IMG/VR virus record: IMGVR_UViG_3300046787_000200
Span: 62,001-126,000 of that record
DNA length: 64,000 nt
Strand: one strand, 5' to 3'
Made by a program: the position numbers and the translations under genes. Below the pieces are notes generated by a model, which did not search any database, was not told where the DNA came from, and saw nothing but the letters and a program-made list of their open reading frames with translations. Below, one piece after another: positions 3 through 27,332 of this stretch. How positions within the stretch are numbered: the stretch's first letter is position 1; each line of letters opens with the position of its first letter.

Positions 3-563
3 ACCAATTCAGTATTTGACTATTGGAAACACTTTAAAAGTGTACATGTACAAACAAGTATTGATGCTGAAGGTAAAAGAGCAGAATATTGGAGAGACGG
101 TACTGTTTGGGAAGACATACTTACTAATATAAAACTTATTAAAGAAAGCAAAGTTCAATGGTCTATACATAGTGTAATCTCTTGGGCTAATGTTTATAGC
201 TATGTAGAATTAGTTAAAACATTATTACAAGAAAAATTATCACTCGGGTATAATTTTACCATATGGTGCTTAGATGAAAGCCATGAATTTAACTTACAAG
301 AATTACCTGACTTTAAAAAACAAGAAATAGCAAGTATGCTAGATACATTTATTGTAGAGTTAGAAGATGGTAAATTTGGTAGATATTTAGGTGAACCTGT
401 AATAAAAACAAATATAGAAAATATTAAAATGTTTATGTTTGCTAAATCAATACCTATAAATAAAGAAAAATTTGAAAAACATTTCATACTAGATGGTATA
501 AGAAATAAGGATTTCTTTGAGTACTTCCCCGAACATGAAAACATGAGAGAATATATACAATGA
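3..563 (+). CDS. Radical SAM protein, C-terminal part (5' truncated by window edge)
   Basis: Frame open from base 3 (TNSVFDYWKHFKSVHVQTSIDAEGKRAEYWRDG...), with the SID-x-G-x-RAEYWR motif of the downstream paralogues; same frame as ORF 336..563. Confidence 0.85.
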   Translation, partial: TNSVFDYWKHFKSVHVQTSIDAEGKRAEYWRDGTVWEDILTNIKLIKESKVQWSIHSVISWANVYSYVELVKTLLQEKLSLGYNFTIWCLDESHEFNLQELPDFKKQEIASMLDTFIVELEDGKFGRYLGEPVIKTNIENIKMFMFAKSIPINKEKFEKHFILDGIRNKDFFEYFPEHENMREYIQ

Positions 564-4202: not shown

Positions 4203-4246
4203 ATGGTATACGGAACTAAATAAAAAGATCCCGTAATATTATCACA

Positions 4247-5536
4247 ATGTCTATATTAGAAAAAGCCTCTACCAGTAAAACCTTTTGCATATACCCATGG
4301 ATACATCAGTATGTAGGCCCTAAAGGTGACGTTAAACCATGTTGTTTATTCAACCCTAATAAAGATGGTATAGGTAGTCTTAAAGAAAATACGCTTAAAG
4401 AAATATGGAACAATGACGCAACAAAACAAATGCGTTTAGATATGCTTAACGGAGTCACCATAAAAGGCTGTGAAAAATGTGACAGTCGTGAGGGTATTAT
4501 TGCTGTTCACCGTGATGAAGCAAATAACAATTGGTACTATCAATCTAAAGATATATTAGAACAAACCAATGAAGATGGATCATTGCCCACACATCAATTA
4601 AAATATATTGATGCAAGATTCAATAATCTATGCAATTTTAGATGTAGAACATGTGGCCCTAGATTTAGCACATCATGGAATGAAGATTATCAAGCATTAC
4701 GATCTCCGAATTCGATGAATGAGTTTCCTAAAACACTTATTTTTCCCGGTAACACTAAAGATCAATTATTAGATGAGATATTAGAGCATTTACCTTATGT
4801 CAATCGTATCTACTTTGCAGGTGGTGAACCGCTCATGCAAGCAGAACACTATATAATGTTAGAAAAGCTATTAGAGTTAAAAAATGATGGTATAATTAAT
4901 AAGATGCCAATCATTGTTTATAGTACTAATTTCAGCACATTGCGATTGGGTAATAGATCAATTATTGATTTATGGAAACACTTCCCTACATTGATTCTCA
5001 ATTTAAGTATTGATGGTAGCTATGAACGTGCAGAATATTGGCGTAAAGGTACAGATTGGCAAGCAATTGTTGATAATTTAAAAGAAGTAAAAAACAATAT
5101 ATCACATGCTCAAATTAATATTAATTACACATTGTCATGGGTTAATGCATTTAATTTAACAGAATTGCATAAAGAATGGGTAACACTAGATTATATAAAT
5201 CCAAATAAAATAAATGTCAATTGTTTGGATGACCCGTCGTTTTATTCTTTGAAGTCTATTCCAACATGGAAGAAACAAAGTATTGAACAAAACTTTTTAC
5301 AGCATATTGAATGGTTAAAAAATAATAGACCTAATATGAATAGAAGAATCTATGATAAGACAATTAAGCAATTTACAGATGCAATTAGTTTTATGAATAG
5401 TTATGATTCTGGTAATGACTTTATTCATAAAAGAGAATTTAATGAAATGAATGGGCAATATGACAGAATACGTAACGAAGATTTTTTAAAGGTATTCACA
5501 GAACATATTGACATGCAACAATTTATACAAAAATAA
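4247..5536 (+). CDS. N-terminal twitch-domain radical SAM protein
   Basis: CIYPW...VKPCC...CEKC; CNFRCRTC; GGEP. Confidence 0.9.
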   Translation: MSILEKASTSKTFCIYPWIHQYVGPKGDVKPCCLFNPNKDGIGSLKENTLKEIWNNDATKQMRLDMLNGVTIKGCEKCDSREGIIAVHRDEANNNWYYQSKDILEQTNEDGSLPTHQLKYIDARFNNLCNFRCRTCGPRFSTSWNEDYQALRSPNSMNEFPKTLIFPGNTKDQLLDEILEHLPYVNRIYFAGGEPLMQAEHYIMLEKLLELKNDGIINKMPIIVYSTNFSTLRLGNRSIIDLWKHFPTLILNLSIDGSYERAEYWRKGTDWQAIVDNLKEVKNNISHAQININYTLSWVNAFNLTELHKEWVTLDYINPNKINVNCLDDPSFYSLKSIPTWKKQSIEQNFLQHIEWLKNNRPNMNRRIYDKTIKQFTDAISFMNSYDSGNDFIHKREFNEMNGQYDRIRNEDFLKVFTEHIDMQQFIQK

Positions 5537-5548
5537 CGAGAGACATTA

Positions 5549-6730
5549 ATGGATTTAACACCTTACAAAAATTGCCTAGCATTAAAAAATAGTATTTTTA
5601 TTGCCAACGAAGAAAAGCCATATCGCCCATGTTGTTGGTTTAAAACATATATAGATGCAACAGATGTTGATGACTATAAAAAACAGTTAAGTGAATTAGA
5701 TTTGGAATACAACTGTGATTATTGTATTAAACAAGATCAAGGTGGGCAATATAGCTATAGACAAATGTTTGGTGATCCAAACGAGATGGTTATCACGGCT
5801 TCATTTGATAACATATGCAATTTAAAATGTGTCACTTGCACACCAAATAACAGTACACAAATCCTTGCAGAAAGATTTAAGTTTGATGAAAAAGTTGAAG
5901 CAGAATATGCTAGAAAGTATATCACTGAGGTAGTAGCTAAACAAGCACCTAAGAAAATCGACTTTATAAAAACAACACTAGCAAATGCTAGTTTTAACAG
6001 ATTGCGATTTGATATATTAGGTGGTGAACCATTGATTAACCCAGCCATCTTTGAATTTATGGATTGGTTATCAGATCAACCTTATGCACATAAAACAACA
6101 GTGGCGATTACTACTAATGGAACCACTTACACCGACAAGCTAATTAAGTACCTTAATAAGTTTCAACGTGTGGGAGTGCAAACTAGTATAGATGGTATAG
6201 AAGAAGAATTTGAATATTTACGTTATGGATCATCATTTGAAAATTTAGAACAAGTATGTAATAAATTCTATGCATTGAAAAAACAATATTCTAATTTTGG
6301 TATGGGAACTCATTACACATTATCATGGATGAATTGTTTAAACTTTGCAGAATATTTTAATTGGTCACAAACTAACTACCCTGATATTGAAATTTATGTA
6401 AGTAAGTTACAAAGTCCTGATCATTATTCTATTGAATTATTGTCATTAGAAATGCGAACGCAAATATATAATGAAACAATGAGAAAGATACACACTCCTG
6501 TAAATGCATATTATGAGAAAGCTTTGTTCTTATATAAAGAACATATGTTATCTACAGCGTATGATGAATATAACGAAAAATTATTACAGCACGGCATGTC
6601 TACACTAAACGTTATTGATTATAGACGTAATGCCGATCATAGAAAGATAATTAAAAACTTTGTTAACTTTTTGTCATTAAATAAGAAAAATCCATGGTTC
6701 AACTATGTCATGGATAAAAACCCTAAATAA
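5549..6730 (+). CDS. Radical SAM protein, paralogue of 3012..4202
   Basis: PYRPCCWF...CDYC; CNLKCVTC; GGEPLINP. Confidence 0.88.
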   Translation: MDLTPYKNCLALKNSIFIANEEKPYRPCCWFKTYIDATDVDDYKKQLSELDLEYNCDYCIKQDQGGQYSYRQMFGDPNEMVITASFDNICNLKCVTCTPNNSTQILAERFKFDEKVEAEYARKYITEVVAKQAPKKIDFIKTTLANASFNRLRFDILGGEPLINPAIFEFMDWLSDQPYAHKTTVAITTNGTTYTDKLIKYLNKFQRVGVQTSIDGIEEEFEYLRYGSSFENLEQVCNKFYALKKQYSNFGMGTHYTLSWMNCLNFAEYFNWSQTNYPDIEIYVSKLQSPDHYSIELLSLEMRTQIYNETMRKIHTPVNAYYEKALFLYKEHMLSTAYDEYNEKLLQHGMSTLNVIDYRRNADHRKIIKNFVNFLSLNKKNPWFNYVMDKNPK

Positions 6731-6739
6731 GAAACGAAT

Positions 6740-8056
6740 ATGATAGATAAAAAAATTGAAGATTTATCACCACATTTTTGCAGTGTGCCGTGGCTGCAAA
6801 TACACACTGAACCCAACGGGAAGGTATTTCCCTGTTGCTATTATAGCTTTGATGCAAAGCATGATTTGGGTAATTGGAATAAAGAAAAGCTATCTGACAT
6901 TTTCAATAGTACTAAATGGAATCAACTACGCAAAGATTTCTTAGATGGTAAGAAACCAGACCAATGCACACGTTGTTGGAAAGAAGAAGATTCAGGTTCA
7001 ACTAGTATGCGTCAACGTTTCAATGAAAGATATAGCGATTTCCCTGACTATACAAATCAGAATGGTTACAATAAACTAAAAGATATTATTACATATACCA
7101 ATGATGATGGGTCAGTCGGTGATATAAAATTGGCAACGATTGATTTAATCTTTAACAACTTGTGTAATCTCAAGTGCAGAACATGTGGTCCTGGATTAAG
7201 TACTGGTTGGATCCCTGACCAGATTAAACTAGGTAGATATCAGATTAACCCTACATCATTGATAACAAATGACGGTGTGTTGCATATGCAAGAGGATTTG
7301 GATTATCTGATTGATATGATAGATCCATACACAGAAATACATTTTAGTGGTGGTGAGCCGATGATGCAAGAGGAACACTATCTATTCTTAAAGTTATTAG
7401 TTGAGAAGGGTAAAACTAAAACTAAAATAAGATATAATACTAACCTTACAGTTTATACACTTAAAGACTATAACGCATTTGAAATGTTAAAGCACTTTGA
7501 TAATGTTTTCATTGTGGGTAGTATTGATGCAATGGGTAGTGAAGGTGAATATATACGTAAAGGATTTGATTGGGAGTTAGCTAAAAAGTGGATAGAGACT
7601 GCCAAAGAATATCTACCTAAAGCAGATTATGGAATCAGTGCTGTGTTCAGTTTATTGAACTGTTATGGATCCGTTGACCTACATAGATATATGTGTGAAA
7701 GTGACACGTTCAAAAGACCTGACGGTAGACAATTTGGATTCTATTTAAATACATTACATGCTCCATCACAGTTAAGAACTAAAATATTACCACCTAGCGT
7801 AAAATTAGAAGTAACAGAAAAGATTAATAAGCATTTAGAGTGGTTAGCAGAAACACAAGAACGTGATTTCAACTATGATGTAACAGTAGCACATTGGAAA
7901 GATGCAATTCAGTTTATGAATAGTGAAGATGAGAGTAAGCAATTACCAAGATTTTATGCGGAAACTGAATTGCTAGATGACATTAGAAAAGAAAAATTTA
8001 GTGATGTGTTCCCTTATTTAGATTCAAAAATTAAAGAGTTTTTAGCAAATGAATAA
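6740..8056 (+). CDS. N-terminal twitch-domain radical SAM protein
   Basis: CSVPW...FPCC...CTRC; CNLKCRTC; GGEP. Confidence 0.9.
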   Translation: MIDKKIEDLSPHFCSVPWLQIHTEPNGKVFPCCYYSFDAKHDLGNWNKEKLSDIFNSTKWNQLRKDFLDGKKPDQCTRCWKEEDSGSTSMRQRFNERYSDFPDYTNQNGYNKLKDIITYTNDDGSVGDIKLATIDLIFNNLCNLKCRTCGPGLSTGWIPDQIKLGRYQINPTSLITNDGVLHMQEDLDYLIDMIDPYTEIHFSGGEPMMQEEHYLFLKLLVEKGKTKTKIRYNTNLTVYTLKDYNAFEMLKHFDNVFIVGSIDAMGSEGEYIRKGFDWELAKKWIETAKEYLPKADYGISAVFSLLNCYGSVDLHRYMCESDTFKRPDGRQFGFYLNTLHAPSQLRTKILPPSVKLEVTEKINKHLEWLAETQERDFNYDVTVAHWKDAIQFMNSEDESKQLPRFYAETELLDDIRKEKFSDVFPYLDSKIKEFLANE

Positions 8057-9362
8057 TAATTTTAATCCAGTCGAACTAGCAAAGAACAGTAAAACATTTT
8101 GTATTTTTCCATGGATACAACAATATGTTGGTCCACCCGGTGATGTTAAACCATGCTGTGTATATGACAACAAAGATGAGATAGGTAACTTAAAAGAAAA
8201 CACATTAGCAGAAATTTGGAACAACGATAAGACTAAACAGATGCGTTTGAATTTTCTGAATGGAATAGAAGAACCGGGATGTAGTATTTGCAACAGACGA
8301 GCAGAACTGGGTCATGCACATAAGAATGAATATAATAGAATATTCTTTGATTCTGATGCAGAAATTCAGAAAATAGTAGCAAGTACAAATATAGATGGAT
8401 CACTCGATGAACATAAACTTTACTATATTGATGTACGTTATAATAACTTATGTAACTTAAGTTGCCGTAGTTGTGCTCCGCACTTTAGTACTAGCTGGGT
8501 ATTGGATCATAGAAAGTTGTACAATATACAACATAAAAGAGATAAAGATGATGGATTTCAATTTCCGGGCAAGACTGAAGAACAAGCATTAGAAGAAATA
8601 TTACCGCATTTGGCTACTGCAAAGATGATTTATTTTGCAGGTGGAGAACCATTAATGCAAAAAGAACATTATGAAGTTCTTAATAAGTTGATAGAGTTGG
8701 GTAATACTGATTTAGAAATACGTTATAATACAAACTTCAGCAATCTTAAATTGAAAAAATATGATAACGTAATTGAATATTGGAAGAAGTTTTCTAATGT
8801 GCATGTATATGCTAGTTTAGACGGTAGTCATGCGAAAGGTGAATATTGGCGTAATGGTATAAATTGGGACCAAGTAGTAGAAAACCGTAAACAAATGATG
8901 AAAGAATGTCCGCATGTTAATTTTATGATTTCATATACATTGAGTTGGCCTAATGCATTGAACTTAGTAGAGTTCCACAGAGAATGGGCTGATTTGGGCT
9001 ATTTGAAACCAGAACACATGTTAGTAAACCCATTAGATACACCATCATATTATTGTTTGAAGAATATTCCTGATTGGAAGAAACGTGAAATAGAAGAAGC
9101 GTTGCAGAAAAACATAGCATGGTTGAAATCTTTTGGACAACCTTTTGGAATCATAAGTATGTATGAAACTGCAATTAAGTTTATGTGGGATGATACCGGA
9201 AAATATAGTTATGGTGTTGATGAAAGCTTGAAAGAGTTTAACAAAATAACTACAAAGTTAGATGATATACGCAATCAAAATTTCTATACAGTATATCCAG
9301 AACACATAAACATTAAAAATTATTTGACACAAAACAATTTAAATGTTGAGTTTAATTATTAA
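8049..9362 (+). CDS. N-terminal twitch-domain radical SAM protein, paralogue of 4247..5536
   Basis: SKTFCIFPW...VKPCC...CSIC; CNLSCRSC; GGEP. Confidence 0.9.
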   Translation: MNNNFNPVELAKNSKTFCIFPWIQQYVGPPGDVKPCCVYDNKDEIGNLKENTLAEIWNNDKTKQMRLNFLNGIEEPGCSICNRRAELGHAHKNEYNRIFFDSDAEIQKIVASTNIDGSLDEHKLYYIDVRYNNLCNLSCRSCAPHFSTSWVLDHRKLYNIQHKRDKDDGFQFPGKTEEQALEEILPHLATAKMIYFAGGEPLMQKEHYEVLNKLIELGNTDLEIRYNTNFSNLKLKKYDNVIEYWKKFSNVHVYASLDGSHAKGEYWRNGINWDQVVENRKQMMKECPHVNFMISYTLSWPNALNLVEFHREWADLGYLKPEHMLVNPLDTPSYYCLKNIPDWKKREIEEALQKNIAWLKSFGQPFGIISMYETAIKFMWDDTGKYSYGVDESLKEFNKITTKLDDIRNQNFYTVYPEHINIKNYLTQNNLNVEFNY

Positions 9363-10615
9363 TGGATGAAAAGAAGCTATTTAAAATAAGAGATGAGACT
9401 AGTCCAACTATGTGTTTGGCTAAGTTCCATGAGGCTAGTATTTGGGTTTACTCAGGTAAGATAGCCAGCTGTCACTACACTCCGTTCATACAAGTAGGTA
9501 ATACAGTAGATACATTCTACAATCCTACTGAAAAACGTGAACAACAAAAACGTATGCTTGCAGGAGAACAACCACCTGCATGTGATAGTTGCTGGCGTTA
9601 TGAGAACTTAGGATTGCGTAGTGATAGAACACGTAAGAGCTTGAGCTTCAAGGATCACTTATCAGCAGAAGATTATAAGAATCCTAACTATGTATTCAAA
9701 CCAAAAGCATTAGAGTTAGCTTTTCAAAATACATGTAACTTAGCATGTAGCTACTGTAGTCCACAATTCAGTACAAGCTGGATGAATGATATCAGAGTAA
9801 ATGGTGTTTATCAACAAATCGTTACAGATGATCGTAGACATTATCAAAAAGATATCAATGAAATCAATGAGATGATTGACCCTCCTGACATGACATTGTT
9901 CTGGGAATGGTTTGAAACTGTTGCAACTAGTTTAGAATCTATCCGTGTTTCGGGCGGAGAGCCACTAATGCATGAAGAAGTTTTTCGTGTGTTTGAGATG
10001 ATGACAGAGATGAACCCTAACATTGAATGCGTGATACACAGCAACCTCTGTCAAAAGCCAGTAGTTATGGATAGATTCTTTGATAAGATTAGTGGCTTAA
10101 CTAACTTGCGTATGAACATTAGTAATGAATCTGCAGGTGAAACAGCAGAATTTATACGTGAGGGTATGGTATATACTGAATGGTTAGAAAATATTGAACG
10201 ATTGGCTAATAGTACAGTAAGAGAATTTAGTGTAAGCACAACAGTTAGTGCAATTGCATTACAATCATTAGATCAAATGTATTTGGATATTATTGCTATT
10301 CGTAATCGTAGTAAAGTAAAGCCATATATATCTATCAATATGGTTGATAAGCCAGACTTTCAGGGCTTTGCTTGTTTAACTAGAAGTGAACGTGATTTCT
10401 ATATTGATAAATATACCAAGTTCTATGAATCAATTAACCATGAATTGTTACCAGTTGAACATGAACACTGTGCTAGATTGTTAAAGTTCTTAGATGAAGG
10501 GTTTGTTAAAGAAACACAACCTCAATTGCGTAAAGACAGTGATATCTTTTTTGAACAATATACTAAACGTAGAAACAAGCCAGACAATTTGGCAAAATAT
10601 ATAGGATTAAAATAA
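9362..10615 (+). CDS. N-terminal twitch-domain radical SAM protein
   Basis: CLAKF...SCHYTP...CDSC; CNLACSYC; GGEP. Confidence 0.88.
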   Translation: MDEKKLFKIRDETSPTMCLAKFHEASIWVYSGKIASCHYTPFIQVGNTVDTFYNPTEKREQQKRMLAGEQPPACDSCWRYENLGLRSDRTRKSLSFKDHLSAEDYKNPNYVFKPKALELAFQNTCNLACSYCSPQFSTSWMNDIRVNGVYQQIVTDDRRHYQKDINEINEMIDPPDMTLFWEWFETVATSLESIRVSGGEPLMHEEVFRVFEMMTEMNPNIECVIHSNLCQKPVVMDRFFDKISGLTNLRMNISNESAGETAEFIREGMVYTEWLENIERLANSTVREFSVSTTVSAIALQSLDQMYLDIIAIRNRSKVKPYISINMVDKPDFQGFACLTRSERDFYIDKYTKFYESINHELLPVEHEHCARLLKFLDEGFVKETQPQLRKDSDIFFEQYTKRRNKPDNLAKYIGLK

Positions 10616-11787
10616 TGGAAGAACAGATGTATGATATAAATTGTGTGACGAGATTGCACATTGAGTTATCAAGTAGATGTAATGCTAGTTGCCCTGCATG
10701 TAGTAGAAATCATAGCGGTGGCCCTGTTGCAGAAGATTTAGAACTTACTGAGTTATCAATCGATGATATCAAACGTATGGTTCCAGTAGAGATTGCACGA
10801 AATATAAAAAGTATTAATTACTGTGGCAATGTTGGTGATCCAGGTATGGCACCTGATCTATTAGAAATCATACAATATTTTAGAGAACATTCACCTAAGG
10901 TCGTACAACAAATTAGAACAAACGGTGGAATGCGCAACCCTGAGTATTGGACTAAGTTGGGTAATTTCTTTGCAAGACAAGCAGATCCCAATAATAAGTT
11001 CTTATTTAACATGGCAGGGGTAGTGTTTAGTGTTGATGGATTAGAAGATACTAATCACATTTATCGCAGAGGTGTTAAATGGGAAAAGTTAATTGCTAAC
11101 ATGAGAGCATATAGTGCTACCGGTGCATATGCTATATGGGAGTGGTTGATATTTGAGCACAATCAACATCAAGTTGAAGAAGCAAGAGCATTAGCAAAAG
11201 AATTAAATTTTCAGTTTATTGTTAAGAATCCACTAGGATTCGGTGAATATGATGGTAAAGTTAAGGGCTTATCTGTGTATAACAAAGAAGGTGCGTATGA
11301 GTACTCTATTTGGCCTGCTAATCACAAAGGTCCCAAAGAAGGACCAAACTTTGGTGAGAAAGTAGATTTCACTAAAATGATTAAAACGATTCCTATCATA
11401 AATGAATTCAGTAAAGAATTAGAAAAAACTTCTACAATAAAATGTAAGTCAATTGAACGTAAAGAATCACAAGAAGTTTATATCTCTGCTACTGGATACA
11501 TGCTACCATGTTGTTTCTTGGGAGGTGTATTTGGACAATTTAATAGTTCTTATAGTAGATATCAATTTAATACAATGATTAATGATTATGGATTGGATGT
11601 GTTTAATTTAAACAAACGTTCAATGTTAGAGATAATTAAAGGTCCTGAATTTTCAAAATTCTTTTTAGATGGTTGGAAAGCAGATACGATTGAGAATGGT
11701 AAATTGTTATTTTGTTTAGAAACATGCGGAAATCAATCTGCTATGGATAAATTATATAGAACTAAGATGATAGAGGTATCAAAATGA
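10615..11787 (+). CDS. Radical SAM protein with C-terminal SPASM/twitch cysteines
   Basis: N-terminal CNASCPAC; CGNVGDP in place of GGEP; C-terminal IKC...LPCC...CLETC. Confidence 0.88.
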   Translation: MEEQMYDINCVTRLHIELSSRCNASCPACSRNHSGGPVAEDLELTELSIDDIKRMVPVEIARNIKSINYCGNVGDPGMAPDLLEIIQYFREHSPKVVQQIRTNGGMRNPEYWTKLGNFFARQADPNNKFLFNMAGVVFSVDGLEDTNHIYRRGVKWEKLIANMRAYSATGAYAIWEWLIFEHNQHQVEEARALAKELNFQFIVKNPLGFGEYDGKVKGLSVYNKEGAYEYSIWPANHKGPKEGPNFGEKVDFTKMIKTIPIINEFSKELEKTSTIKCKSIERKESQEVYISATGYMLPCCFLGGVFGQFNSSYSRYQFNTMINDYGLDVFNLNKRSMLEIIKGPEFSKFFLDGWKADTIENGKLLFCLETCGNQSAMDKLYRTKMIEVSK

Positions 11788-12533
11788 GAATAGGTGTATT
11801 TGGTGATAGTTTCGCAGATAGAAACCCATACAATCCAGAAAGTCCCTTTAAGGAAGATGAATCATGGATGAAATGTATGGAAGATTCAGGACATGAAATT
11901 ACTACGTATGGGAAAACTGGTACTTCAACATGGTATTCGTTTCAACAATTCTTAGCACACCATGATCAATTTGATCATGTTATATTCTGTTATTCATCAA
12001 TGCATAGAATACATCATTTGCCAGAAGGACTTGAAGATTTAAGTTTCTTGACCACACCCGATCAACTTTATGAATTGAGAAAAAATAAAAACTTAACTCA
12101 ACGACAAGAATTGGATATAGTAAGAATACTTACAGGTCACGTACCTAACATTAGTACTACGTTTGACTTGTTTGTTAAGCAACATATATTTGATGAAGTT
12201 AATAATCTATGTAGAAATAAAAACATCAAGTTAGTTAATCTACTAACATTTGATGATAGAAAAGAAAAAAATTATTCTATTGACCTAGCGTTAAGAGCAG
12301 GTGATTGTTTATATAACTTATTTGAAGTAAGTCGTAGAGAATTACCTAGTATGGATAGAGTAGATAACAGATGGTGTCATTTATCACACGAATTAAATCT
12401 ATCATTGTCTGTACTATTAAGTCAATCTCTTAACAGTAAAGAATTACGCATTTTAGATTTACGCAAACATCCGGAATTTAATAAAGTTAACTATGATATC
12501 ACCTTGAGGTATATGAATGAGCCAACTACGTAA
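11784..12533 (+). CDS. SGNH/GDSL-like hydrolase or acyltransferase
   Basis: N-terminal FGDSF and late R-x-CH motif. Confidence 0.65.
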   Translation: MRIGVFGDSFADRNPYNPESPFKEDESWMKCMEDSGHEITTYGKTGTSTWYSFQQFLAHHDQFDHVIFCYSSMHRIHHLPEGLEDLSFLTTPDQLYELRKNKNLTQRQELDIVRILTGHVPNISTTFDLFVKQHIFDEVNNLCRNKNIKLVNLLTFDDRKEKNYSIDLALRAGDCLYNLFEVSRRELPSMDRVDNRWCHLSHELNLSLSVLLSQSLNSKELRILDLRKHPEFNKVNYDITLRYMNEPTT

Positions 12534-13263
12534 GATTATCACTTTGGGTGATAGTTTTACGTTTGGACATGGGTGTGCAGACCGTGAATATTACTATGAC
12601 CATGATACTAAAACATTCATAGGTGATCATAGACCTTTTAAAGAAAATATTCCTAGTCAATATTGTTGGCCTACTTTACTTCAGCAACATATGCATGAGG
12701 TTGAAGTTATTAATTTATCGCAACCGGCAAATTCCAATCAGGGACTATTCCGTAACTTATTAACCTATTGTGAAACCAACACAATTAATGAAGGTGATAT
12801 TATCATCTTTAACGGATCATTCCCGGGTAGGATAGACATTGCATCAGGTGCTCGTCCTGAAGTTACTGTTCCTTGGGTCATGGGTTGGGATCACCAATCA
12901 CAAATGGAAAATGAAATTGAATACAATGTTGCTAAAAAAATGTACATAACACATTTATTCAATGATTCAATAGGATATACACAATCATTGTCATCAGTAT
13001 TAGCAACACATGCATTTGCTACAATGTATAAAGCAAAGTATATTTGGTCATTGCCCAATCATGTTTATCCAAAAGAAGTTCTGGATAAACTAAAACCAAT
13101 TAATCATTTACGAATAACAGACTTATGTAAATATGATTTTTCTGGCACTAACACATATGATTTTAACAAAACTTGTTTTGCTCCCGATTATCACGTGAAT
13201 AATTTGGGACATTCTATATACTTGCAAAAACAAATAATCCCCGTCATACAATCCCTTCTATAA
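12517..13263 (+). CDS. SGNH/GDSL-like hydrolase
   Basis: GDSFTFG, NLS-x-P-x-x-SN, DYHVNNLGH. Confidence 0.75.
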   Translation: MSQLRKIITLGDSFTFGHGCADREYYYDHDTKTFIGDHRPFKENIPSQYCWPTLLQQHMHEVEVINLSQPANSNQGLFRNLLTYCETNTINEGDIIIFNGSFPGRIDIASGARPEVTVPWVMGWDHQSQMENEIEYNVAKKMYITHLFNDSIGYTQSLSSVLATHAFATMYKAKYIWSLPNHVYPKEVLDKLKPINHLRITDLCKYDFSGTNTYDFNKTCFAPDYHVNNLGHSIYLQKQIIPVIQSLL

Positions 13264-13271
13264 ATATCGTA

Positions 13272-14621
13272 ATGAATAATAATGAACAAATAGACAATCC
13301 AGACTCTGAATTCGTTGAAAAGAAAGTATTTCCCATACAAAACGAAGCCGCATGCTTGTACAAATGGGCATGGAGTACTATTTTCTTAAGCAGAGGTACA
13401 ACATCAAGTTGCCATAGAGGTCGTCATTGGAGATTGACTGAGGATAACTTCATGGATTTTCATAACCATCACGGTAAATTAGCCGACAGAGAAAAAATGT
13501 CGAGTGGGGAATGGCCTGGTAATGGTTGTGAGTACTGTAGAGATATAGAAAAAGCAGGTGGAACTAGTGATAGATCAGGATTTGTAAATGAATCAATAGA
13601 ACTATTACCACCTGAGTTTGAAGGATATGTACAGCGTATATATGAATATGATACTATCCCGTTAAAAGTAAGTCCTACACTATTAGAAGTTTATTTTAAC
13701 AATGTATGTAATCAATCATGTGTCTATTGCACTCCTGGATTTAGTAGTCAGATTGAACAAGAGGTTCGCAAATACGGGCCTAGCAAGTATAATGAAGATT
13801 ACAGCACATGGCGTCCTGATTCAAAATACGAATTGTATAAAGAAAAGTTTTGGGAATGGATGGCAAAGAATAGTGAGCATGTACAGATATTACAAGTATT
13901 AGGCGGTGAGCCACTATATCAAAAAGAGTTTGAACAATGTTTAGATTTCTTTGACAAGAACCCTAGACCTAATTTAGTATACCGTTCATTTAGTAATCTA
14001 AAACACGATCCTGAAAAGTTTAAAGCAAAGATACAGCGAGTACAAAACTTGATTGATCAAGGTAAATTAAAACGTATGGAAGTTGTATGTAGCATTGATT
14101 GCTGGGGTCCGGAAATTGAATATGTACGTGATGGCTTGATACTAGCCGAATGGGAAGAAAACATGAACACATTGTTAACGACTCCTGGTATGGGAGTATT
14201 AGTTCATGCTACACTTACTGCATTAACGTTGCCTACATTGAATCAATTGATAGAGAAAACAAATGAATGGCGTAAGATAAAAGATACAGTAGGTATCAAT
14301 TGGAATACAGTTGTTAGACCATCAACATTCAATCCATATAATTTTGGTAAATATTTGGCACCGTTTATTGATAGATCGATTGATGCATTAAATTACTATA
14401 GTAACCATGTAGAGAAAGAAAAGTTACAGACACACTTACGTGGTATACAACAACAGTTATTAACTACACCCGCAAATAAAAAAGAAGTTAATGACTTTGC
14501 TAACTTCTTAGATGATATAGACAAACGTAGAAATAGAGATTGGCGAACATTATTTCCGCAAATTGTAGATATTGTAAATATTATAAACAAAGAGGAACCA
14601 GACTATGTTCAAGTGGATTAA
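13272..14621 (+). CDS. N-terminal twitch-domain radical SAM protein
   Basis: CLYKW...SCHRG...CEYC; CNQSCVYC; GGEP; TATAAATA 5 nt upstream. Confidence 0.88.
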   Translation: MNNNEQIDNPDSEFVEKKVFPIQNEAACLYKWAWSTIFLSRGTTSSCHRGRHWRLTEDNFMDFHNHHGKLADREKMSSGEWPGNGCEYCRDIEKAGGTSDRSGFVNESIELLPPEFEGYVQRIYEYDTIPLKVSPTLLEVYFNNVCNQSCVYCTPGFSSQIEQEVRKYGPSKYNEDYSTWRPDSKYELYKEKFWEWMAKNSEHVQILQVLGGEPLYQKEFEQCLDFFDKNPRPNLVYRSFSNLKHDPEKFKAKIQRVQNLIDQGKLKRMEVVCSIDCWGPEIEYVRDGLILAEWEENMNTLLTTPGMGVLVHATLTALTLPTLNQLIEKTNEWRKIKDTVGINWNTVVRPSTFNPYNFGKYLAPFIDRSIDALNYYSNHVEKEKLQTHLRGIQQQLLTTPANKKEVNDFANFLDDIDKRRNRDWRTLFPQIVDIVNIINKEEPDYVQVD

Positions 14622-14709
14622 AAACTTATATCACAGCATAAAATCAGAGTTACGTTATCGTAAACGATTAAAAGAATTAAAGAAACGTGACCCATTTATA
14701 TACAAATGA
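14605..14709 (+). CDS. 34-aa basic micro-protein MFKWIKNLYHSIKSELRYRKRLKELKKRDPFIYK (not in ORF track)
   Basis: AGAGGA SD upstream; fills the gap between genes; ATGA overlap with next gene. Confidence 0.7.
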   Translation: MFKWIKNLYHSIKSELRYRKRLKELKKRDPFIYK

Positions 14710-15518
14710 TTCCGCTGAATAATTTATTGGACTCACAAGACTTTAGTGAGGTAATTCCGTATACAAAAGTCGAGCATAAAACATTATCAATTGATGCATA
14801 TACTACTGATTTTGCATCATTTGATGATATGAAATATGCTGAGTACTGGCAAGGAGAGCAGTTCAATTATTTTTATAATAGATATGGATTCAGAGATATT
14901 GATGTTATCCCTGAATCCATAGACATAGGTGCATTTGGTTGTAGCTTCACTGCCGGGTTAGGATTACCGGAACATATGCTTTGGCATAAACTGTTAGGCA
15001 CCTCATCATACAATTTTGGTGTGTCGGGTGCTAGTACTAAATCAGTGTTTGATTTGTTTTTAATAACATCTAAACATGTTAAAATGAAAAATGCTATATT
15101 TTTACTACCAAGTTTAAATAGAGTTCAAATTGCGGCGACAAATCCATTATTGTCCAGAATATCTTATTTGTCAATTGTCCCTTCGCATAAAAGTGAATTA
15201 GCATTAGTACATGGGGTTGATAGTGAGTTGGTATACAAAGTATTACCGGAAGAAGAACAGATAAAAAACTTTAGAAACGATGCATACATCATAGATCATA
15301 TAGCAAAAGAACGTGGTATTAATGTATATCTGTCTACTTGGGACAGTCTTACATATGAAGTATTGGCACAATTAAAATTTACACATTGTACTGTATTGCC
15401 AGTATGGGGTTCTCTCTCACAGGAACAAGCAGAATCAGATTTAGCTAGAGATAAAAAACATCCGGGGCCAATACATCATCAGCAATGGGTTGACAAAATT
15501 AAACATTTAATAAAATGA
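14706..15518 (+). CDS. SGNH-like protein
   Basis: NRYGFRD, FGCSFTAG, NFGVSGAS, ARDKKHPG. Confidence 0.7.
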   Translation: MIPLNNLLDSQDFSEVIPYTKVEHKTLSIDAYTTDFASFDDMKYAEYWQGEQFNYFYNRYGFRDIDVIPESIDIGAFGCSFTAGLGLPEHMLWHKLLGTSSYNFGVSGASTKSVFDLFLITSKHVKMKNAIFLLPSLNRVQIAATNPLLSRISYLSIVPSHKSELALVHGVDSELVYKVLPEEEQIKNFRNDAYIIDHIAKERGINVYLSTWDSLTYEVLAQLKFTHCTVLPVWGSLSQEQAESDLARDKKHPGPIHHQQWVDKIKHLIK

Positions 15519-17020
15519 ACTACATAGGAATATCAGCCGGATTCCATGATGCGGCATTATCAGTTATTGACGATAGTGGCAATATATTATTTGCTGGACA
15601 TAGTGAACGTTATAATAAACAGAAACATACAAAACACTTATCAATTGGTATAGTTGAAGATGCATTATCGTATTGCAATAGCAGAGATATACAGATTCAT
15701 TACTATGAACGCCCGTGGATGAAGTTTCTACGACAAGTTCGTTCAGGTGAAAAGCCTAAGTTATCTAGTCTATTGCTTAAAGAAACAATTGGTACTGGAT
15801 TACTACACAAACTACAAGATGGCCGTGGGGGTAAAGTACATACTCACAATCATCATTTAAGTCATGCGGCTGCAGGGTTTCAAACAAGTCCATATGATGA
15901 TGCTACAGTAGTTGTTATTGATGCTATTGGTGAGTTCGACACTATCAGTATTTGGAACGCATACTATGACAAGAACGGTGTAGCACAATACAAAAAACTA
16001 TGGGGACAGAAGTACCCAGATAGCATTGGCTTATTCTATTCGGCAATGACAGAACGAGTGGGTTTGCGACCATTAGATGAAGAATACATTTTGATGGGCA
16101 TGGCGGCATATGGTAAGTCAAACCTAAAACAAGAATTAAAAGAAATGTCCGATACATTAATACGATCATATAAAGATATTACTTTTAAAGACAATCTACA
16201 TACGGGTGTGTCAGATGATTTGCTTAAAGATACAGACCATATGGATATTGCTTGTAGTACACAATTGATCGCAGAACAATTGATTGCATCTGTTATCAGT
16301 AGAGCAAAAAGTTTAAGTAATAGTAAGAACTTAGTATATGGTGGTGGCGTAGCATTAAATTGTTTAGCAAATAGATTATTAGGAAACTTTTATGACAACA
16401 TTTGGATTATGCCTAATCCTGGCGATGCTGGTTCTAGTCTTGGAGCGGCTTGTCTTGGTTATGGCAAACGTATTAACTGGACTGATGCTTACCTTGGTCA
16501 TAATATTCTTGGTCAGTATCCTGTCAATCAGTTATTGGATCATCTTACTACCACTGGCATTGTTGGTGTGGCTAATGGTCGTGCTGAGTTCGGACCTAGA
16601 GCCCTTGGACATAGAAGCCTACTTGCAGACCCAAGAGGAACAGAAATAAAGGATAAAGTAAATGAAATTAAACGTAGGCAAAAGTTTAGACCCTTTGCGC
16701 CAGTCATTCTGGAGGAGTATGCTGATATGTATTTTGATATGCCTCGTGGCTTCAGTAACAGTAGGTATATGCAAGTCATCGCTCGTTGCAGGCATCCTGA
16801 CTTATTTCCTGCTATCGTTCATAATGATGGTACTAGTAGGGTACAGACTGTGCCAAGGGATGGCTCCGGAATACGAGGACTATTAGAGAAATGGTATGTA
16901 TTGACAGGTTGCCCGATGTTGCTTAATACTAGCTTAAACATACGAGGCGAGCCAATGGTAAATGACCGAAACGATGCAGATCGCTTTGAAATAATGTATA
17001 ATGTAAAAGTTATATCATAA
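15515..17020 (+). CDS. Carbamoyltransferase (NodU/CmcH/TobZ family)
   Basis: GFHDAA, HHLSHAAA, GGVALNC, PGDAG, EFGPRALGHRSLLADPR, RPFAP, LLNTSLN. Confidence 0.95.
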   Translation: MNYIGISAGFHDAALSVIDDSGNILFAGHSERYNKQKHTKHLSIGIVEDALSYCNSRDIQIHYYERPWMKFLRQVRSGEKPKLSSLLLKETIGTGLLHKLQDGRGGKVHTHNHHLSHAAAGFQTSPYDDATVVVIDAIGEFDTISIWNAYYDKNGVAQYKKLWGQKYPDSIGLFYSAMTERVGLRPLDEEYILMGMAAYGKSNLKQELKEMSDTLIRSYKDITFKDNLHTGVSDDLLKDTDHMDIACSTQLIAEQLIASVISRAKSLSNSKNLVYGGGVALNCLANRLLGNFYDNIWIMPNPGDAGSSLGAACLGYGKRINWTDAYLGHNILGQYPVNQLLDHLTTTGIVGVANGRAEFGPRALGHRSLLADPRGTEIKDKVNEIKRRQKFRPFAPVILEEYADMYFDMPRGFSNSRYMQVIARCRHPDLFPAIVHNDGTSRVQTVPRDGSGIRGLLEKWYVLTGCPMLLNTSLNIRGEPMVNDRNDADRFEIMYNVKVIS

Positions 17021-17028: not shown

Positions 17029-20000
17029 ATGTTAAGAGATGTATTTTATTTCGGAGATAAACCCAACGTTCACCCAAGAGAAAAGTTTGCAGTAGATTTA
17101 GCTGATGCTAAACGACAGTCAACCACTGAGCACTTTTGGATAATTAACGAACATTGTAATTATAAAGATTTTGATTGGGACTGGGACTTTGATTTCCTAC
17201 CCGATGAAGATGTGTGGGCAGAAGAACACAACAATGTTTGGCCTAGCCCCTATCAGAAAGATAGTGGCACTTGGTTATGCAATGCAGACAATGATGAACC
17301 ACTAACAATCTATCGTGCAGACGTAGATCCTATTCCATTAAAAGATGAAGTAACAAGTAACTGGAAGATCATTGAATATATTGAAAAAGATAAATTTGAT
17401 TTTAAATGGCATCCAGACCCAACTGACCCTCCCTACATATATGTATTTGGTAATGAATGGTATCCCGGGACTATTATGCCCACAGTTGAATATCATGTTG
17501 AAGGTGCAACAGAACGTAAATATGTAACTGATCAAATAGCTCAACTATTACCAATGCCAATGTTGTTCAATATCATATATGAACCGGCGGAGTTTGATTA
17601 TAGTTGGAGACCAGACCCTACAGCACCACCTTATATCTATGTATTTGGTAACAATCAATATCCTGCAAGTGTGATGCCAACGGTTGAGTTTCATGTTGAA
17701 GGTGCAACAGAACGTAAGTTTATTGAAAATATTGTTCCTAAGTTGGCAGCAAGACCTGCAGAATTTGATGTATTAGAAGATATAGATCAGTCATCATTTG
17801 ATTTTAGTTGGGTCCCTGATCCTACTGCGCCTCCTTATATATATGCTTGGGGTAATCAATGGAACAAGCCAGAAGATAAAATTAGTGTTCAGTATGTAGC
17901 AGAAGGTGCGACAGAATACAAATACATGGATGCACGTACTAAACGTAAGGAGTCAATGAATAATTGGAACATACCACCTAATATGTTTCAAAATAAGTTT
18001 GATTTTAGTTGGGAACCTAGTCCGGCTGATCTACCGTTCATATATCAATTTGGTACTCAATGGCAAAAAACACATGGTCCTCAATATATTGTAGAAGGCG
18101 CTACCGAGATAAAATATGTTGACGTATTAAAAGCAGAAGTTGTATGTACTGAGTTTGAAAATTGGCAAGTACCTAGAAACATTGACCAATCTAAGTTTGA
18201 TTTTAGTTGGCATCCCGATAGCACAGAAGAACCATACATCTATCAATTTCCTGATCAGTGGACCAGAACCGGTGGACCTAGATATGTCGTACCCGGCGCA
18301 ACTGAAATCAAGTACATAGATGTGCAGACAGCAACAGCTAAACATGACAAGACACACTGGGTTATACCTGATGATATTGATGTTAGTGAGTTTGATTTTA
18401 GTTGGCACCCCGACATAGATCACGCACCATTGATATATCAATTTGGAACTCAGTGGCAACGAACTAGTGGACCTAAGTTTTATGCAGTCGGTTGCACAGA
18501 AGATAGTGATATACAATATGTTGACATTATCAAAGCTAAAGCTTTGCCTAATAAAGAATTATGGCAAACATTAATCTCAGTAGATAATTTTGATTATAGC
18601 TGGCATCCAGATGAAACTGAAGAACCCTACATATATGTTTTTGGCAATCAATGGAATCGTGCTGAAGTAGAACCTACATTAATATATGAGATGCCTGGAG
18701 CAACACATAAAAAGTATATTAATGACATTGGTATTAAAGCATCTGCATATGCTGAAGGTTGGGAAACAATTGAAGATATTGAATCATTTGATTACAGTTG
18801 GAGACCTGATCCAGGGGATCCCGCATACATATATGTATTTGGTAATAAGCAATATGATGGCACAATTATGCCCACAGTTAAATTACATATCAAAGACGCT
18901 ACACAAGAAAAGTTTGTTGATGATATTGTTGCAACATTGGCACAACGTCCCGATCTATTTAAAAACACAGAACTAATCAAAGACTTTGACTATTCATGGA
19001 GACCAAACCCTAAAGACCCACCGTATGTATATCAGTTCGGGACACAATGGGCTAAAACACATGGACCTCAGTTTATTATACCTGAAGCTATTGAGACAAA
19101 ATTTATTAACTATCCAGTTGCAACAATATTGCCTGATATGACACACTGGGAAATACCAGAGAATGTTGATGTTACTAAGTTTGATTTTAGCTGGCACCCA
19201 GATGGTACTGCACCCGCATACATCTATCAATTTGGCACACTGCTTGATGATAAAGATGGTCCTAGATATATTACACCTGATAATGATGGTATAGTTGTTA
19301 ATTTAGAGCGTAAAGAAATCATATTAGAAGAATTGATATTCCCTAAGTACAATATAAAGACCACACTAGAAGATTTAATAAACGAACATGAAGGTGAAAT
19401 CTTTTGGGCTATCAACCCTGAACTTGACTACTCAAACTTTGATTTCAAGTGGGTACCTGATAAACAAAATGTCTATCACATTAATGCATTCGGTAGTAAA
19501 GATAATATCAACACACAGACTTATTTTGTCAATGGTAAAATGTGGCAGAAAGGCTACCGTGATATTAATTACGTTGAAGATAAAGTAATTGATGTTAGAA
19601 CTAAAATTGATATGTTCTTTGTTGACAGAGGTAATAGTCAATCACAAGAACGATTCAATAAGCTAAAGGCAAAGTTTGATAACATCACTAAAACACGATA
19701 CTTGAACAGTTGGGTTGATACAATTAATCGGTGTATTACTAAGTCAAGTACAAACTTGTGCTGGATATTGAACAGTGAGCTTGACTATGATGATTTTGAG
19801 TTTGATTACTATCCTAGTCCATGGCAAATGCGCATGGTTCATGTGTTCGGTACTCAGTGGAGTCATTGGGGCACAACGTTTATGGTTAACAAACATAGCT
19901 TCAGTGAAGATACAAAATATGTTAAAGTTATTGAACATTTAAGTAATCTTAACTTTGTCAAACGTAAGACTGCTAAAGCAACTAATTGTTTGTATGACAT

Positions 20001-21312
20001 ATATTTGATAGACCATGGAAATGAGTTACCAAAAGACATTAAAGGACATAATTATACTACGGTCAAATATGAACGTAGTTACTTAAACACATTTAAGAAT
20101 TTAGTAAAGACTTTACCGGACAAGAAAGAACATTATATTTGGATATGCAGTAGCGTATGTGATTATGAAAACTTTGATTTTGGTTATATTTGTGATCCAT
20201 ATGCCAAAGATCAATTACATGTATTCCCAAGCGACAAACAAAAGTTTGGAGATACTTTCCTAATTGATGTAAATAAGTTACGCACATTAATTGATGATAT
20301 GATTATGTTGGAAGATTATGAGAAGGTCAACTATAATCAACATCAAAGGGCGAAACGTTTACCTGCCCCTATTATTATTACGAAAGAAGATACACATGTT
20401 AACGATATTCATACTGACTTTGATTGGCCTTACGCTACGTTTGTCACGGAAGACAATAAAGAAATACAAGTAACAGATGTAGAACCAATGAGTTTATGGA
20501 CACCTGATAGTAAAAATATTATTATTACTAGTACCGGTGCAACACGAATCATTGTACCTAAAGAAGCAAAAGATTATGTAGAGAATGAGTTGTATGATTA
20601 TCCATACATCAGCCGTAGTAAATCTCTAGTTAAATCTCAGCCACTGGATATAGTCTTCCTAAGCAACGGTGAAACTGGTGCTGACGAGAACTACGAACAT
20701 TTACTGAAAGTGACTACGGGATTAAAGAATAGAGTTGTGCGTGTAGATGGCGTTAATGGTCGTGTACAAGCCTATCATGCGGCAGCAGAAGCAAGTAACA
20801 CGCCATGGATGTTCACCGTGTTTGCTAAGTTACGTGTTGATGATAAATTTGATTGGTCATGGCAACCTGATAGACTACAAGTACCCAAGCATTATATCTT
20901 TAATGCAACAAACCCTGTCAATGGATTAGAGTATGGTCACCAAGCTATGATTGCTTATAACAAGAAGATTACATTAGCTAATACTGGTAGAGGGCTTGAC
21001 TTCACATTAGATGACGAACATGAAGTTGTTGAAATGAATAGCGGTATAGCTATGTACAATACAGATGCCTGGAGTACATGGCGTACTGCATTTAGAGAAG
21101 CACTAAAACTAAGAGCCGATACTAGCCAAGCAAGTAAAGATAGATTAGATGCATGGTTAAATAAAGGCGAAGGGAACTTTGCCCAATATAGTTGTGAAGG
21201 TGCGCAACATGCTATAGAATACTATGAATCAGTTAATGGTGATTTAGATAAATTACGTCTAAGTTATGATTGGCCTTGGTTGAAAGAGTATTTTAATAAT
21301 AAATACAATTGA
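17029..21312 (+). CDS. 1427-aa protein with internal tandem repeats and C-terminal glycosyltransferase(GT-A)-like domains
   Basis: About 10 FD(F/Y)SWxPDx4PYIYxFG repeats; C-terminal DIVFLSNGE...RVDGVNG...YHAAA...WRTAFRE. Confidence 0.75.
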   Translation: MLRDVFYFGDKPNVHPREKFAVDLADAKRQSTTEHFWIINEHCNYKDFDWDWDFDFLPDEDVWAEEHNNVWPSPYQKDSGTWLCNADNDEPLTIYRADVDPIPLKDEVTSNWKIIEYIEKDKFDFKWHPDPTDPPYIYVFGNEWYPGTIMPTVEYHVEGATERKYVTDQIAQLLPMPMLFNIIYEPAEFDYSWRPDPTAPPYIYVFGNNQYPASVMPTVEFHVEGATERKFIENIVPKLAARPAEFDVLEDIDQSSFDFSWVPDPTAPPYIYAWGNQWNKPEDKISVQYVAEGATEYKYMDARTKRKESMNNWNIPPNMFQNKFDFSWEPSPADLPFIYQFGTQWQKTHGPQYIVEGATEIKYVDVLKAEVVCTEFENWQVPRNIDQSKFDFSWHPDSTEEPYIYQFPDQWTRTGGPRYVVPGATEIKYIDVQTATAKHDKTHWVIPDDIDVSEFDFSWHPDIDHAPLIYQFGTQWQRTSGPKFYAVGCTEDSDIQYVDIIKAKALPNKELWQTLISVDNFDYSWHPDETEEPYIYVFGNQWNRAEVEPTLIYEMPGATHKKYINDIGIKASAYAEGWETIEDIESFDYSWRPDPGDPAYIYVFGNKQYDGTIMPTVKLHIKDATQEKFVDDIVATLAQRPDLFKNTELIKDFDYSWRPNPKDPPYVYQFGTQWAKTHGPQFIIPEAIETKFINYPVATILPDMTHWEIPENVDVTKFDFSWHPDGTAPAYIYQFGTLLDDKDGPRYITPDNDGIVVNLERKEIILEELIFPKYNIKTTLEDLINEHEGEIFWAINPELDYSNFDFKWVPDKQNVYHINAFGSKDNINTQTYFVNGKMWQKGYRDINYVEDKVIDVRTKIDMFFVDRGNSQSQERFNKLKAKFDNITKTRYLNSWVDTINRCITKSSTNLCWILNSELDYDDFEFDYYPSPWQMRMVHVFGTQWSHWGTTFMVNKHSFSEDTKYVKVIEHLSNLNFVKRKTAKATNCLYDIYLIDHGNELPKDIKGHNYTTVKYERSYLNTFKNLVKTLPDKKEHYIWICSSVCDYENFDFGYICDPYAKDQLHVFPSDKQKFGDTFLIDVNKLRTLIDDMIMLEDYEKVNYNQHQRAKRLPAPIIITKEDTHVNDIHTDFDWPYATFVTEDNKEIQVTDVEPMSLWTPDSKNIIITSTGATRIIVPKEAKDYVENELYDYPYISRSKSLVKSQPLDIVFLSNGETGADENYEHLLKVTTGLKNRVVRVDGVNGRVQAYHAAAEASNTPWMFTVFAKLRVDDKFDWSWQPDRLQVPKHYIFNATNPVNGLEYGHQAMIAYNKKITLANTGRGLDFTLDDEHEVVEMNSGIAMYNTDAWSTWRTAFREALKLRADTSQASKDRLDAWLNKGEGNFAQYSCEGAQHAIEYYESVNGDLDKLRLSYDWPWLKEYFNNKYN
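17395..19290 (+). repeat. Ten diverged ~60-70 aa protein repeats
   Basis: Recurrent FD(F/Y)SW(H/R)PD, P(Y/F)IY(V/Q)FG, GATE-x-K(Y/F); recurrent ttgattttagttgg at DNA level. Confidence 0.9.
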
Positions 21313-27085: not shown

Positions 27086-27128
27086 TTCGAAGGGTGCTAG
27101 TCACCCTTCTTTTTAATAAGGAAATAAA

Positions 27129-27281: not shown

Positions 27282-27306
27282 CAATAAATCATATATGTGC
27301 TATAAT
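27278..27306 (+). promoter_or_regulatory. Phage early promoter
   Basis: TTGACA-ATAAATC...-TATAAT, 17-nt spacer. Confidence 0.85.
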
Positions 27307-27332
27307 ACACACATATTCAGTAAAGGAACAAC

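Follow-up and report, generated by a model that had tools for sequence, protein, structure and literature searches.

A 34-residue DPFIYK micro-protein as a predicted partner of a carbamoyltransferase in a T4-like jumbo phage

We analysed a stretch of 64,000 nucleotides (hereafter the window), bases 62001-126000 of the 352,012-bp viral record IMGVR_UViG_3300046787_000200, which is judged complete, and concentrated on a micro-open reading frame (micro-ORF) whose 34-residue product, P0001, ends in RDPFIYK. The best reading of our data is that the micro-ORF is a translationally coupled partner of the nearby carbamoyltransferase (CT), within a glycan-tailoring cassette. We are almost certain that 14605..14709 is a real micro-protein gene, which annotation has missed and whose translation is predicted. 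The unannotated ORF, its good Shine-Dalgarno site and its RDPFIYK end had been picked out by an earlier, sequence-only reading of the window, and all of them are where that reading placed them. The features on which the argument depends are the following.

14591..14596, + strand: Shine-Dalgarno-like AGAGGA, 8 nt before the ATG of the micro-ORF
14605..14709, + strand: micro-ORF P0001, 34 residues, C-terminus RDPFIYK (from the open reading frame, conservation and selection)
14706..15518, + strand: SGNH-fold protein P0004, with G-C-S block I and D249/H252 (from an AlphaFold2 (AF2) model, Foldseek and invariant residues)
15515..17020, + strand: NodU/CmcH-type carbamoyltransferase of 501 residues (Carbam_trans_N 5e-34, Carbam_trans_C 1e-46, PHROG 1601 3e-94)

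Conservation and selection of the micro-ORF

The micro-ORF is tightly packed between its neighbours. Its 5′ end lies inside the 3′ end of a radical SAM gene, with a 17-nt overlap, and its stop codon overlaps the ATG of the P0004 gene in the ATGA at 14706-14709; the stop of the P0004 gene in turn overlaps the start of the CT gene. P0001 consists of a variable amphipathic N-terminus, a polybasic helix and the invariant C-terminal RDPFIYK, and carries a net charge of +9 in its 34 residues.

Relatives were collected in two ways. In the CT-first scan, 34 viral contigs were fetched through CTs 63-86% identical to that of the window, and all 34 carry, upstream of the CT and on the same strand, an ORF of 31-45 residues that ends in KRDPFIY(K). 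In the motif-first scan, a degenerate DNA pattern for KRDPFIYK retrieved at least 120 viral contigs, and 119 of the 120 listed have an ORF of 31-51 residues ending at the motif or at most two residues beyond it. The pattern itself imposes KRDPFIYK on every motif-first member, so that the unbiased material consists of the CT-first loci and two further viruses, Ralstonia phage RsoM2USA and the marine virus AG-345-D19. In most relatives, the start codon is likewise preceded, at an equal distance, by a purine-rich AGGA/GGAG-like stretch.

Within the CT-first set, the last 12 codons of the micro-ORF show a nonsynonymous divergence (dN) of 0.096 versus a synonymous divergence (dS) of 1.33, and the Pro, Phe, Ile and Tyr of the motif are invariant while all of their synonymous codons are used. 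Most of the conservation falls within the ~17 residues that precede the stop; the N-terminus is variable in sequence, with its hydrophobic periodicity and length retained among relatives. Across the family, the C-terminus reads D-P-[F/Y]-I-Y followed by 0-3 residues. The conserved position, length and start site, together with the purifying selection, place the micro-ORF far beyond chance.

Scans of Pfam, NCBIfam and PHROGs gave no family for the micro-protein. The family profile, however, matches more than 7,174 protein clusters at E≤1 among the 8,000 candidates scored, and these are 'hypothetical proteins' of 36-75 residues without Pfam domains; the ESM Atlas likewise holds unnamed clusters of the same size. 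By these profile matches, P0001 belongs to a very large unnamed micro-protein family. One metagenomic protein of 75 residues, P0006, contains two micro-protein units of different subtypes fused in one ORF, each ending in DPFIYK, a fusion which suggests that some phages may carry tandem paralogues.

A tblastn search of cultured phages with the 34-residue P0001 gave no match, from a query that was too short, was masked as low complexity and missed even the ORF of RsoM2USA; cultured carriers were therefore found through their CT. The nearest cultured phage is RsoM2USA (MG752970), whose CT is 44% identical to that of the window. It carries an unannotated 36-residue ORF ending in KQDPFIYK (L002 11026-11136, corresponding to 125890-126000 on the minus strand of MG752970), located one gene (gp200, DUF6071) upstream of the CT (gp199), where the 109 nt between gp201 and gp200 carry no annotation. 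AG-345-D19, also found through its CT, has an unannotated variant ending in SDPYIYEE. Contigs from two metatranscriptome libraries overlap the micro-ORF of the window, one of them identical over 14625-14863, which is only a hint of transcription, as such libraries can contain DNA.

Linkage to the carbamoyltransferase and the surrounding cassette

The gene at 15515..17020 is, from its sequence matches, unambiguously a predicted NodU/CmcH/TobZ-type CT. An NCBIfam match joins those to Pfam and PHROGs, the protein has a Kae1-like N-domain plus a C-domain, and the His/Asp residues that a Kae1-like domain should have (H113, H114, H117, D136 and D304) are invariant in 52 relatives.

A CT was found within the fetched stretch in 94 of the 120 listed motif-first contigs, on the same strand in 94/94, and in 58 of the 70 loci with at least 2.5 kb of downstream sequence. 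Together with the 34/34 of the CT-first scan, these counts bear out the conservation of the micro-ORF and its co-occurrence with CT genes, on which the sequence-only reading had staked its case. Most of the motif-first CTs start within ~10 nt of the micro-ORF stop, and the adjacency spans CTs 30-86% identical to that of the window and otherwise unrelated neighbourhoods. The 94 partners comprise 57 full-length CTs, 17 truncated where the fetched stretch stops and 20 with the N-domain only (L041 8494-9441, L109 4574-5545 and 18 further loci). The latter are 312-336 residues long, match only CT residues 5-320, the Kae1-like half, and lack Carbam_trans_C. We considered a split CT as the origin of these short partners and ruled it out, as the next gene in L041 is unrelated and helicase-like. 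The SGNH-fold gene lies between the micro-ORF and the CT in some loci only and is absent from many related ones. Given this and the 20 N-domain-only partners, the constant partner of the micro-ORF is the CT N-domain. The proposed coupling to both downstream genes holds for the overlaps in the window; across loci, it is kept for the CT N-domain and not for the SGNH gene. Taken together, we consider it highly probable that the micro-protein is functionally linked to the CT.

In a quick maximum-likelihood tree, the micro-ORF-linked CTs, N-domain-only forms included, form one clade (SH-aLRT 96), with the CT of the window inside it, and the CTs linked to the bacterial small protein DUF5989 form a separate clade (support 97). 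No DPFIY micro-ORF adjoins the five phage CTs checked, from cyanophages and pelagiphages (27-36% identical); four of the five fall outside the linked clade, and the fifth, from phage C48C1, is its sister. The same tree places the N-domain-only CTs at apparently two or more origins inside the linked clade. Two micro-protein subtypes appear, by eye and not by computation, to track two CT subclades, a pattern that shared descent alone could yield.

Some loci depart from this arrangement. In L031 (6001-8232), an SGNH-like ORF separates a 48-codon N-terminal CT fragment from the full CT that comes after it, as if the start of the CT had undergone an insertion or duplication. In the CT-less loci L046 (2178-5862), L110 (4342-7488), L114 and L128, an unknown 473-residue protein and large proteins with cytidylyltransferase-like domains follow the micro-ORF, and the micro-proteins end in DPFIYK plus two residues (NF, NH or SF). 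No relatedness was found between the 473-residue protein and the CT.

The CT and micro-ORF lie among further genes, listed here.

560-14621, + strand: eleven radical SAM genes, ten unbroken at 560-11787 and one at 13272-14621
11784..12533, + strand: possible SGNH-like P0002 (G-D-S at residues 7-9), a weak assignment
12517..13263, + strand: SGNH-like paralogue P0003 (G-D-S block I), from a profile-profile match to the P0004 family
13272..14621, + strand: N-terminal-twitch radical SAM gene (NCBIfam NF033640, 233 bits versus a cut-off of 170)
17029..21312, + strand: giant protein P0005, 1427 residues, downstream of the CT in most related loci
17359..19341, + strand: ten tandem ~66-residue repeats of P0005 (residues 111-771; consensus FDFSWHPDP..PPYIYxFGNQW)
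20632..21309, + strand: GT-A (nucleotide-diphospho-sugar transferase) fold domain of P0005 (residues ~1202-1427; AF2, Foldseek, VIA-align)

Pfam (including Lipase_GDSL), NCBIfam and PHROG searches gave no match for P0002, P0003 or P0004, a sequence search of the PDB with the three found nothing, and 86 relatives of P0004 are likewise without a Pfam family. The AF2 model of P0004 (pLDDT 95) has GDSL/SGNH hydrolases as all of its 50 best Foldseek matches in the PDB, and G78-C79-S80, with the block I serine, and D249/H252, the block V Asp/His, are invariant in 62 relatives. The P0003 family aligns to the P0004 family with an hhalign probability of 96.5% (E 8e-10, 195 columns). P0004 and P0003 are therefore SGNH/GDSL superfamily proteins, P0004 by its modelled fold and invariant residues and P0003 by its profile match. 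Two more SGNH-like genes had been suspected next to that of P0004; P0003 is one, whereas P0002 is only weakly linked by hhalign to the P0003 family (probability 48%, N-terminal 76 columns only), so that 'SGNH-like' there rests on motifs.

P0005 has no Pfam or PHROG family. Its C-terminus, the most conserved part (56-84% identical in near relatives and 25-30% in distant loci), models as glycosyltransferase-like with a GT-A fold: pLDDT is above 90, Foldseek matches it to ArnC, GtrB, SunS and hyaluronan synthase (E 3e-4 to 1e-2), and VIA-align gives Z of 9-11.7 over ~140 residues, for a fold that also covers nucleotidyltransferases. The repeated P(Y/F)IY that had been noticed in this protein is real, with P-[YFL]-[IV]-Y in each of the ten repeats. 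P[YF]IY is seen 6 times in P0005 versus 0.04 expected from composition, an excess that arises because the units are repeats. The idea of a docking motif shared with the micro-protein finds no support: only the four residues of the tetrapeptide P-[F/Y]-I-Y are common to both, and homology of the micro-protein to the repeats was rejected at an hhalign probability of 3%. In the repeats, the motif is embedded in the longer conserved block given above, which looks like the structural core of the repeat domain and leaves the shared motif unsupported.

Across loci, the micro-ORF, the CT and the giant GT-A protein form a conserved phage core, and many loci have only these three; the genes upstream of it are highly variable and include twitch radical SAM arrays, SGNH-fold genes, cytidylyltransferase-like genes and unknowns. 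In the window, sugar-nucleotide enzymes are encoded 13-17 kb further downstream. The cassette as a whole points to the tailoring of a sugar-containing product, perhaps a glycan of the surface or the virion, or some other modification. In such a cassette, acyl or carbamoyl groups would be put on or taken off by the SGNH-fold proteins, and remodelling of the substrate would fall to the twitch radical SAM enzymes.

The source is a T4-like freshwater jumbo phage, with Pfam matches to T4 gp9/10, the T4-type large terminase, gp32 and RecA/UvsX, and a search of sequencing runs found near-identical DNA in the metagenomes of about nine studies, from freshwater, estuary and other aquatic settings. The genes from 3 to 21312 of the window are all on the + strand and densely packed. 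Five of the radical SAM genes have a Pfam SPASM domain, N-terminal in four and C-terminal in one, and only the last (13272-14621) reaches the NF033640 cut-off; its counterpart in RsoM2USA is 26% identical. At the corresponding position, related phages have a different number of radical SAM genes, or none. Further along the + strand, the window encodes a Gram-negative porin homologue at 24249-25133 (Pfam Porin_4, 1e-22) and, at 25985-28610, a MoxR-type AAA ATPase ~250 nt upstream of a DUF2201 metallopeptidase/VWA protein, two proteins that make up a known paired system. The genes at 33201-38514 (+), for a thymidylate synthase, an NAD-dependent sugar epimerase/dehydratase, a DegT-type aminotransferase and two more radical SAM proteins, are predicted to form a sugar-nucleotide pathway near the cassette.

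Proposed role and rival explanations

We propose that the micro-protein would be made in step with the CT, would bind its Kae1-like N-domain through the invariant C-terminal tail, and would act as a small accessory or targeting subunit. This role would parallel that proposed for the membrane-anchored SxtK/DUF5989, minus the transmembrane helix and SxtJ. In the sxtI-J-K-L genes, the CT SxtI is accompanied by sxtJ and sxtK, labelled 'unknown', and by the GDSL lipase SxtL; sxtJ and sxtK were proposed to act with SxtI, and SxtL was proposed to be a decarbamoylase (PMC2679770). The binding mechanism taken by itself falls slightly short of an even chance in our judgement. The overall explanation, a coupled CT partner that is a tail-bound accessory or targeting subunit in a sugar-tailoring cassette, is the best available, with chances that we see as evenly balanced.

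Several observations weigh against this explanation. The positive-inside rule puts the PFIY tail of DUF5989 outside the cytoplasm, which fits poorly with docking to a cytosolic enzyme, and homology of the phage micro-protein to DUF5989 is unproven, the sequence comparison giving an hhalign probability of 41% over 15 N-terminal columns only. The N-terminal amphipathic character is modest and is reached by 20% of shuffles. Among the 70 motif-first loci with enough downstream sequence, 12 are without a recognisable CT, and in CT-less loci the micro-ORF precedes unknown proteins of 473-530 residues, a twitch radical SAM protein or a GDSL-like protein. The glycan-tailoring part rests on folds and on the nearby sugar-nucleotide genes. 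A single complex prediction of the CT with the micro-protein scored 0.00, which speaks neither for nor against binding.

The main rival is that the micro-protein is an acceptor, a carrier or a precursor like those of RiPPs (peptides made on the ribosome and then modified post-translationally), whose tail enters the Kae1-like active site to be carbamoylated on the hydroxyl of its Tyr or the amine of its Lys, perhaps before the peptide is processed further by the SGNH-fold and twitch/SPASM radical SAM enzymes. Precedents for this reading are HypF, which transfers a carbamoyl group to the C-terminal Cys of HypE, and the SPASM/twitch radical SAM enzymes, which typically mature peptides; eleven radical SAM genes flank the micro-ORF. 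The invariant part also sits at the extreme C-terminus, with 0-3 residues past the Tyr, and it is the transferase half of the CT that accompanies the micro-protein. NodU-like CTs do act on peptides, for example on a Lys of a RiPP precursor (PMC13174530), and crocagin provides a case with a precursor, CgnD and CgnI together (PMC10070186). CgnD is among the structural matches of P0004, but only at rank 8 among generic SGNH matches, and neither the radical SAM nor the SGNH genes are constant neighbours. Furthermore, the N-domain-only partners would, by analogy with TobZ, lack the domain that makes the carbamoyl-adenylate, and a transmembrane DUF5989 would be an odd RiPP precursor. On balance, we regard the acceptor role as unlikely.

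A further reading takes P-[F/Y]-I-Y to be a tyrosine-modification site common to the micro-protein and the ten P0005 repeats. The micro-protein would then be a peptide primer, carrier or precursor, glycosylated or carbamoylated at its C-terminal Tyr (or Lys), with remodelling by the twitch radical SAM and SGNH-fold enzymes to follow. This is improbable. If true, it would mean a phage-encoded peptide-anchored glycan or RiPP-like product, with its gene set in thousands of aquatic phages, and SxtK/DUF5989 would be the membrane-tethered counterpart.

The micro-ORF could also be a cis-acting leader or arrest peptide, in which the basic stretch and DPFIYK-stop stall or tune ribosomes and set the expression of the downstream enzyme, with no role for the peptide itself. 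This would account for an ORF that is always 5′ of an enzyme gene, its stop overlapping the start of that gene or lying a few bases from it, for a polybasic stretch adjoining the C-terminus, and for conservation that is strongest in the last ~17 residues next to a variable N-terminus. It does not sit well with the retained hydrophobic periodicity and length of that N-terminus, with the two units fused in P0006, or with bacterial DUF5989, which is found upstream or downstream of the CT. The apparent match of the micro-protein subtypes to the CT subclades is, moreover, what one would expect if the proteins interact. A leader peptide is therefore, in our estimate, a poor bet.

Less probable still is an independent small cationic protein that binds membranes or nucleic acids, such as a host-takeover factor, and whose gene is simply carried along with that of the CT. 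The +9 charge, the amphipathic N-terminal helix and the loci without a CT would suit it; against it stand the same-strand adjacency in 94/94 and its persistence at CT identities of 30-86% and in unrelated neighbourhoods, such as that with the helicase-like gene in L041. Finally, a chance ORF or annotation artefact, which the absence of annotation in RsoM2USA and of a Pfam or PHROG family might suggest, is already refuted by the CT-first and motif-first scans, the purifying selection (dN and dS above) and a family profile matched by over 7,000 clusters, and the conserved start and Shine-Dalgarno site and the coverage by contigs from RNA libraries leave it a negligible probability.

Micro-proteins routinely escape annotation, and this one is unannotated even in a cultured phage, RsoM2USA, which could serve as an experimental system. 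What is new is a large unnamed metagenomic family of over 7,000 clusters, without a Pfam or PHROG entry, and its place in a conserved core with the CT and the GT-A giant protein amid variable radical SAM, SGNH-fold and other genes. What the conserved small proteins beside bacterial CTs do has been a question ever since the first report of the sxt cluster, and the phage version gives a handle on SxtJ/SxtK. As it is soluble, does without SxtJ and in some phages comes down to two genes (the micro-ORF and an N-domain-only CT), it is directly testable in vitro.

Comparison with known systems

In RsoM2USA, gp203, gp201 and gp200 are DUF6071 (PF19547) proteins with a G-C-S motif, located between the twitch radical SAM gene, the micro-ORF and the CT. 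Like the SGNH-fold proteins of the window, they have ~280 residues, G-C-S near the N-terminus and D-H-P near the C-terminus. The window proteins, in contrast, fail PF19547 and align with the RsoM2USA proteins only at the last motif. Among the papers searched, none mentions DUF6071 or DUF5989.

The Nol-like CTs of PHROG 1601 (P-SSM2, S-SSM7, HTVC008M, S-CAM8) belong to the same enzyme family, also occur in T4-like phages and are often among sugar-modifying genes. Unlike the CT of the window, to which they are only 27-32% identical, these cyanophage and pelagiphage enzymes are without a DPFIY micro-ORF and fall outside the linked clade.

Crocagin biosynthesis uses a short precursor, whose core contains Tyr20 and a Trp, the esterase-like protease CgnD and the carbamoyltransferase CgnI (PMC10070186). 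The module in the window resembles crocagin/std-type RiPP pathways in having a short peptide with a conserved C-terminal Tyr or Lys beside a NodU-like CT and an SGNH-fold protein. It differs in that no dioxygenase or peptide-binding CgnB/E-type genes are recognised in the phage module, that the phage SGNH gene is dispensable across loci, and that the module lies in a phage genome beside a GT-A protein.

The closest parallel is with bacterial SxtK/DUF5989, which the sequence-only reading had named as a precedent. A pattern for APFIYTLF retrieved at least 120 bacterial genome stretches from many phyla, and at least 119 small ORFs in them end exactly in APFIYTLF followed by the stop; they are typically 49-52 residues long, with a central hydrophobic helix. 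In 98 of the 119 listed, the same strand carries a CT no further than 8 kb away, upstream or downstream. The three of these ORFs that were scanned match Pfam DUF5989 (PF19451) with 86-88 bits. SxtJ and GDSL-like genes are among the neighbours in seven sampled DUF5989 loci, SxtJ in 4/4 loci checked, so the precedent holds. In a Planctomycetota metagenome-assembled genome (L172 2809-4371), a single open frame joins an N-terminal part with a G-D-S motif, hydrophobic segments and a DUF5989-type end, and may be a natural fusion of parts of the bacterial module.

The suggestion that the micro-protein is a soluble analogue of SxtK stands as far as solubility goes. On a 19-residue Kyte-Doolittle window, 0/132 phage members reach the transmembrane-grade value of 1.6, and the median of the maximum is -0.5 for the phage proteins versus 2.8 for DUF5989; SxtJ (PF19588) has no match in the 352-kb phage genome at E≤10. 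Descent from a common ancestor could not be demonstrated with hidden Markov models or hhalign. P0001, the RsoM2USA ORF and four of the longest phage members do not match PF19451 (cut-off 27 bits) at E≤10, nor does a six-frame search of the whole phage genome with this model. The N-terminal parts of the phage members match a DUF5989 N-terminal model no better than reversed sequences do, and this similarity was rejected as evidence of homology.

The two small proteins differ in their ends, DPFIY(K) in phages and APFIYTLF in DUF5989, in the transmembrane helix and SxtJ, which only the bacterial system has, in position, always upstream of the enzyme in phages and on either side in bacteria, and in partner CTs, which fall into separate clades. 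They share P-F-I-Y at or near the C-terminus, an N-terminal amphipathic helix followed by basic residues, a same-strand NodU/CmcH-type CT at most 8 kb off and in many cases separated by just a few bases, and SGNH/GDSL genes in the same loci. We treat the phage micro-protein as a functional analogue and possible remote relative of DUF5989 rather than a member. Among the CT-associated PFIY micro-proteins, it represents a variant that phages carry and that has no transmembrane helix.

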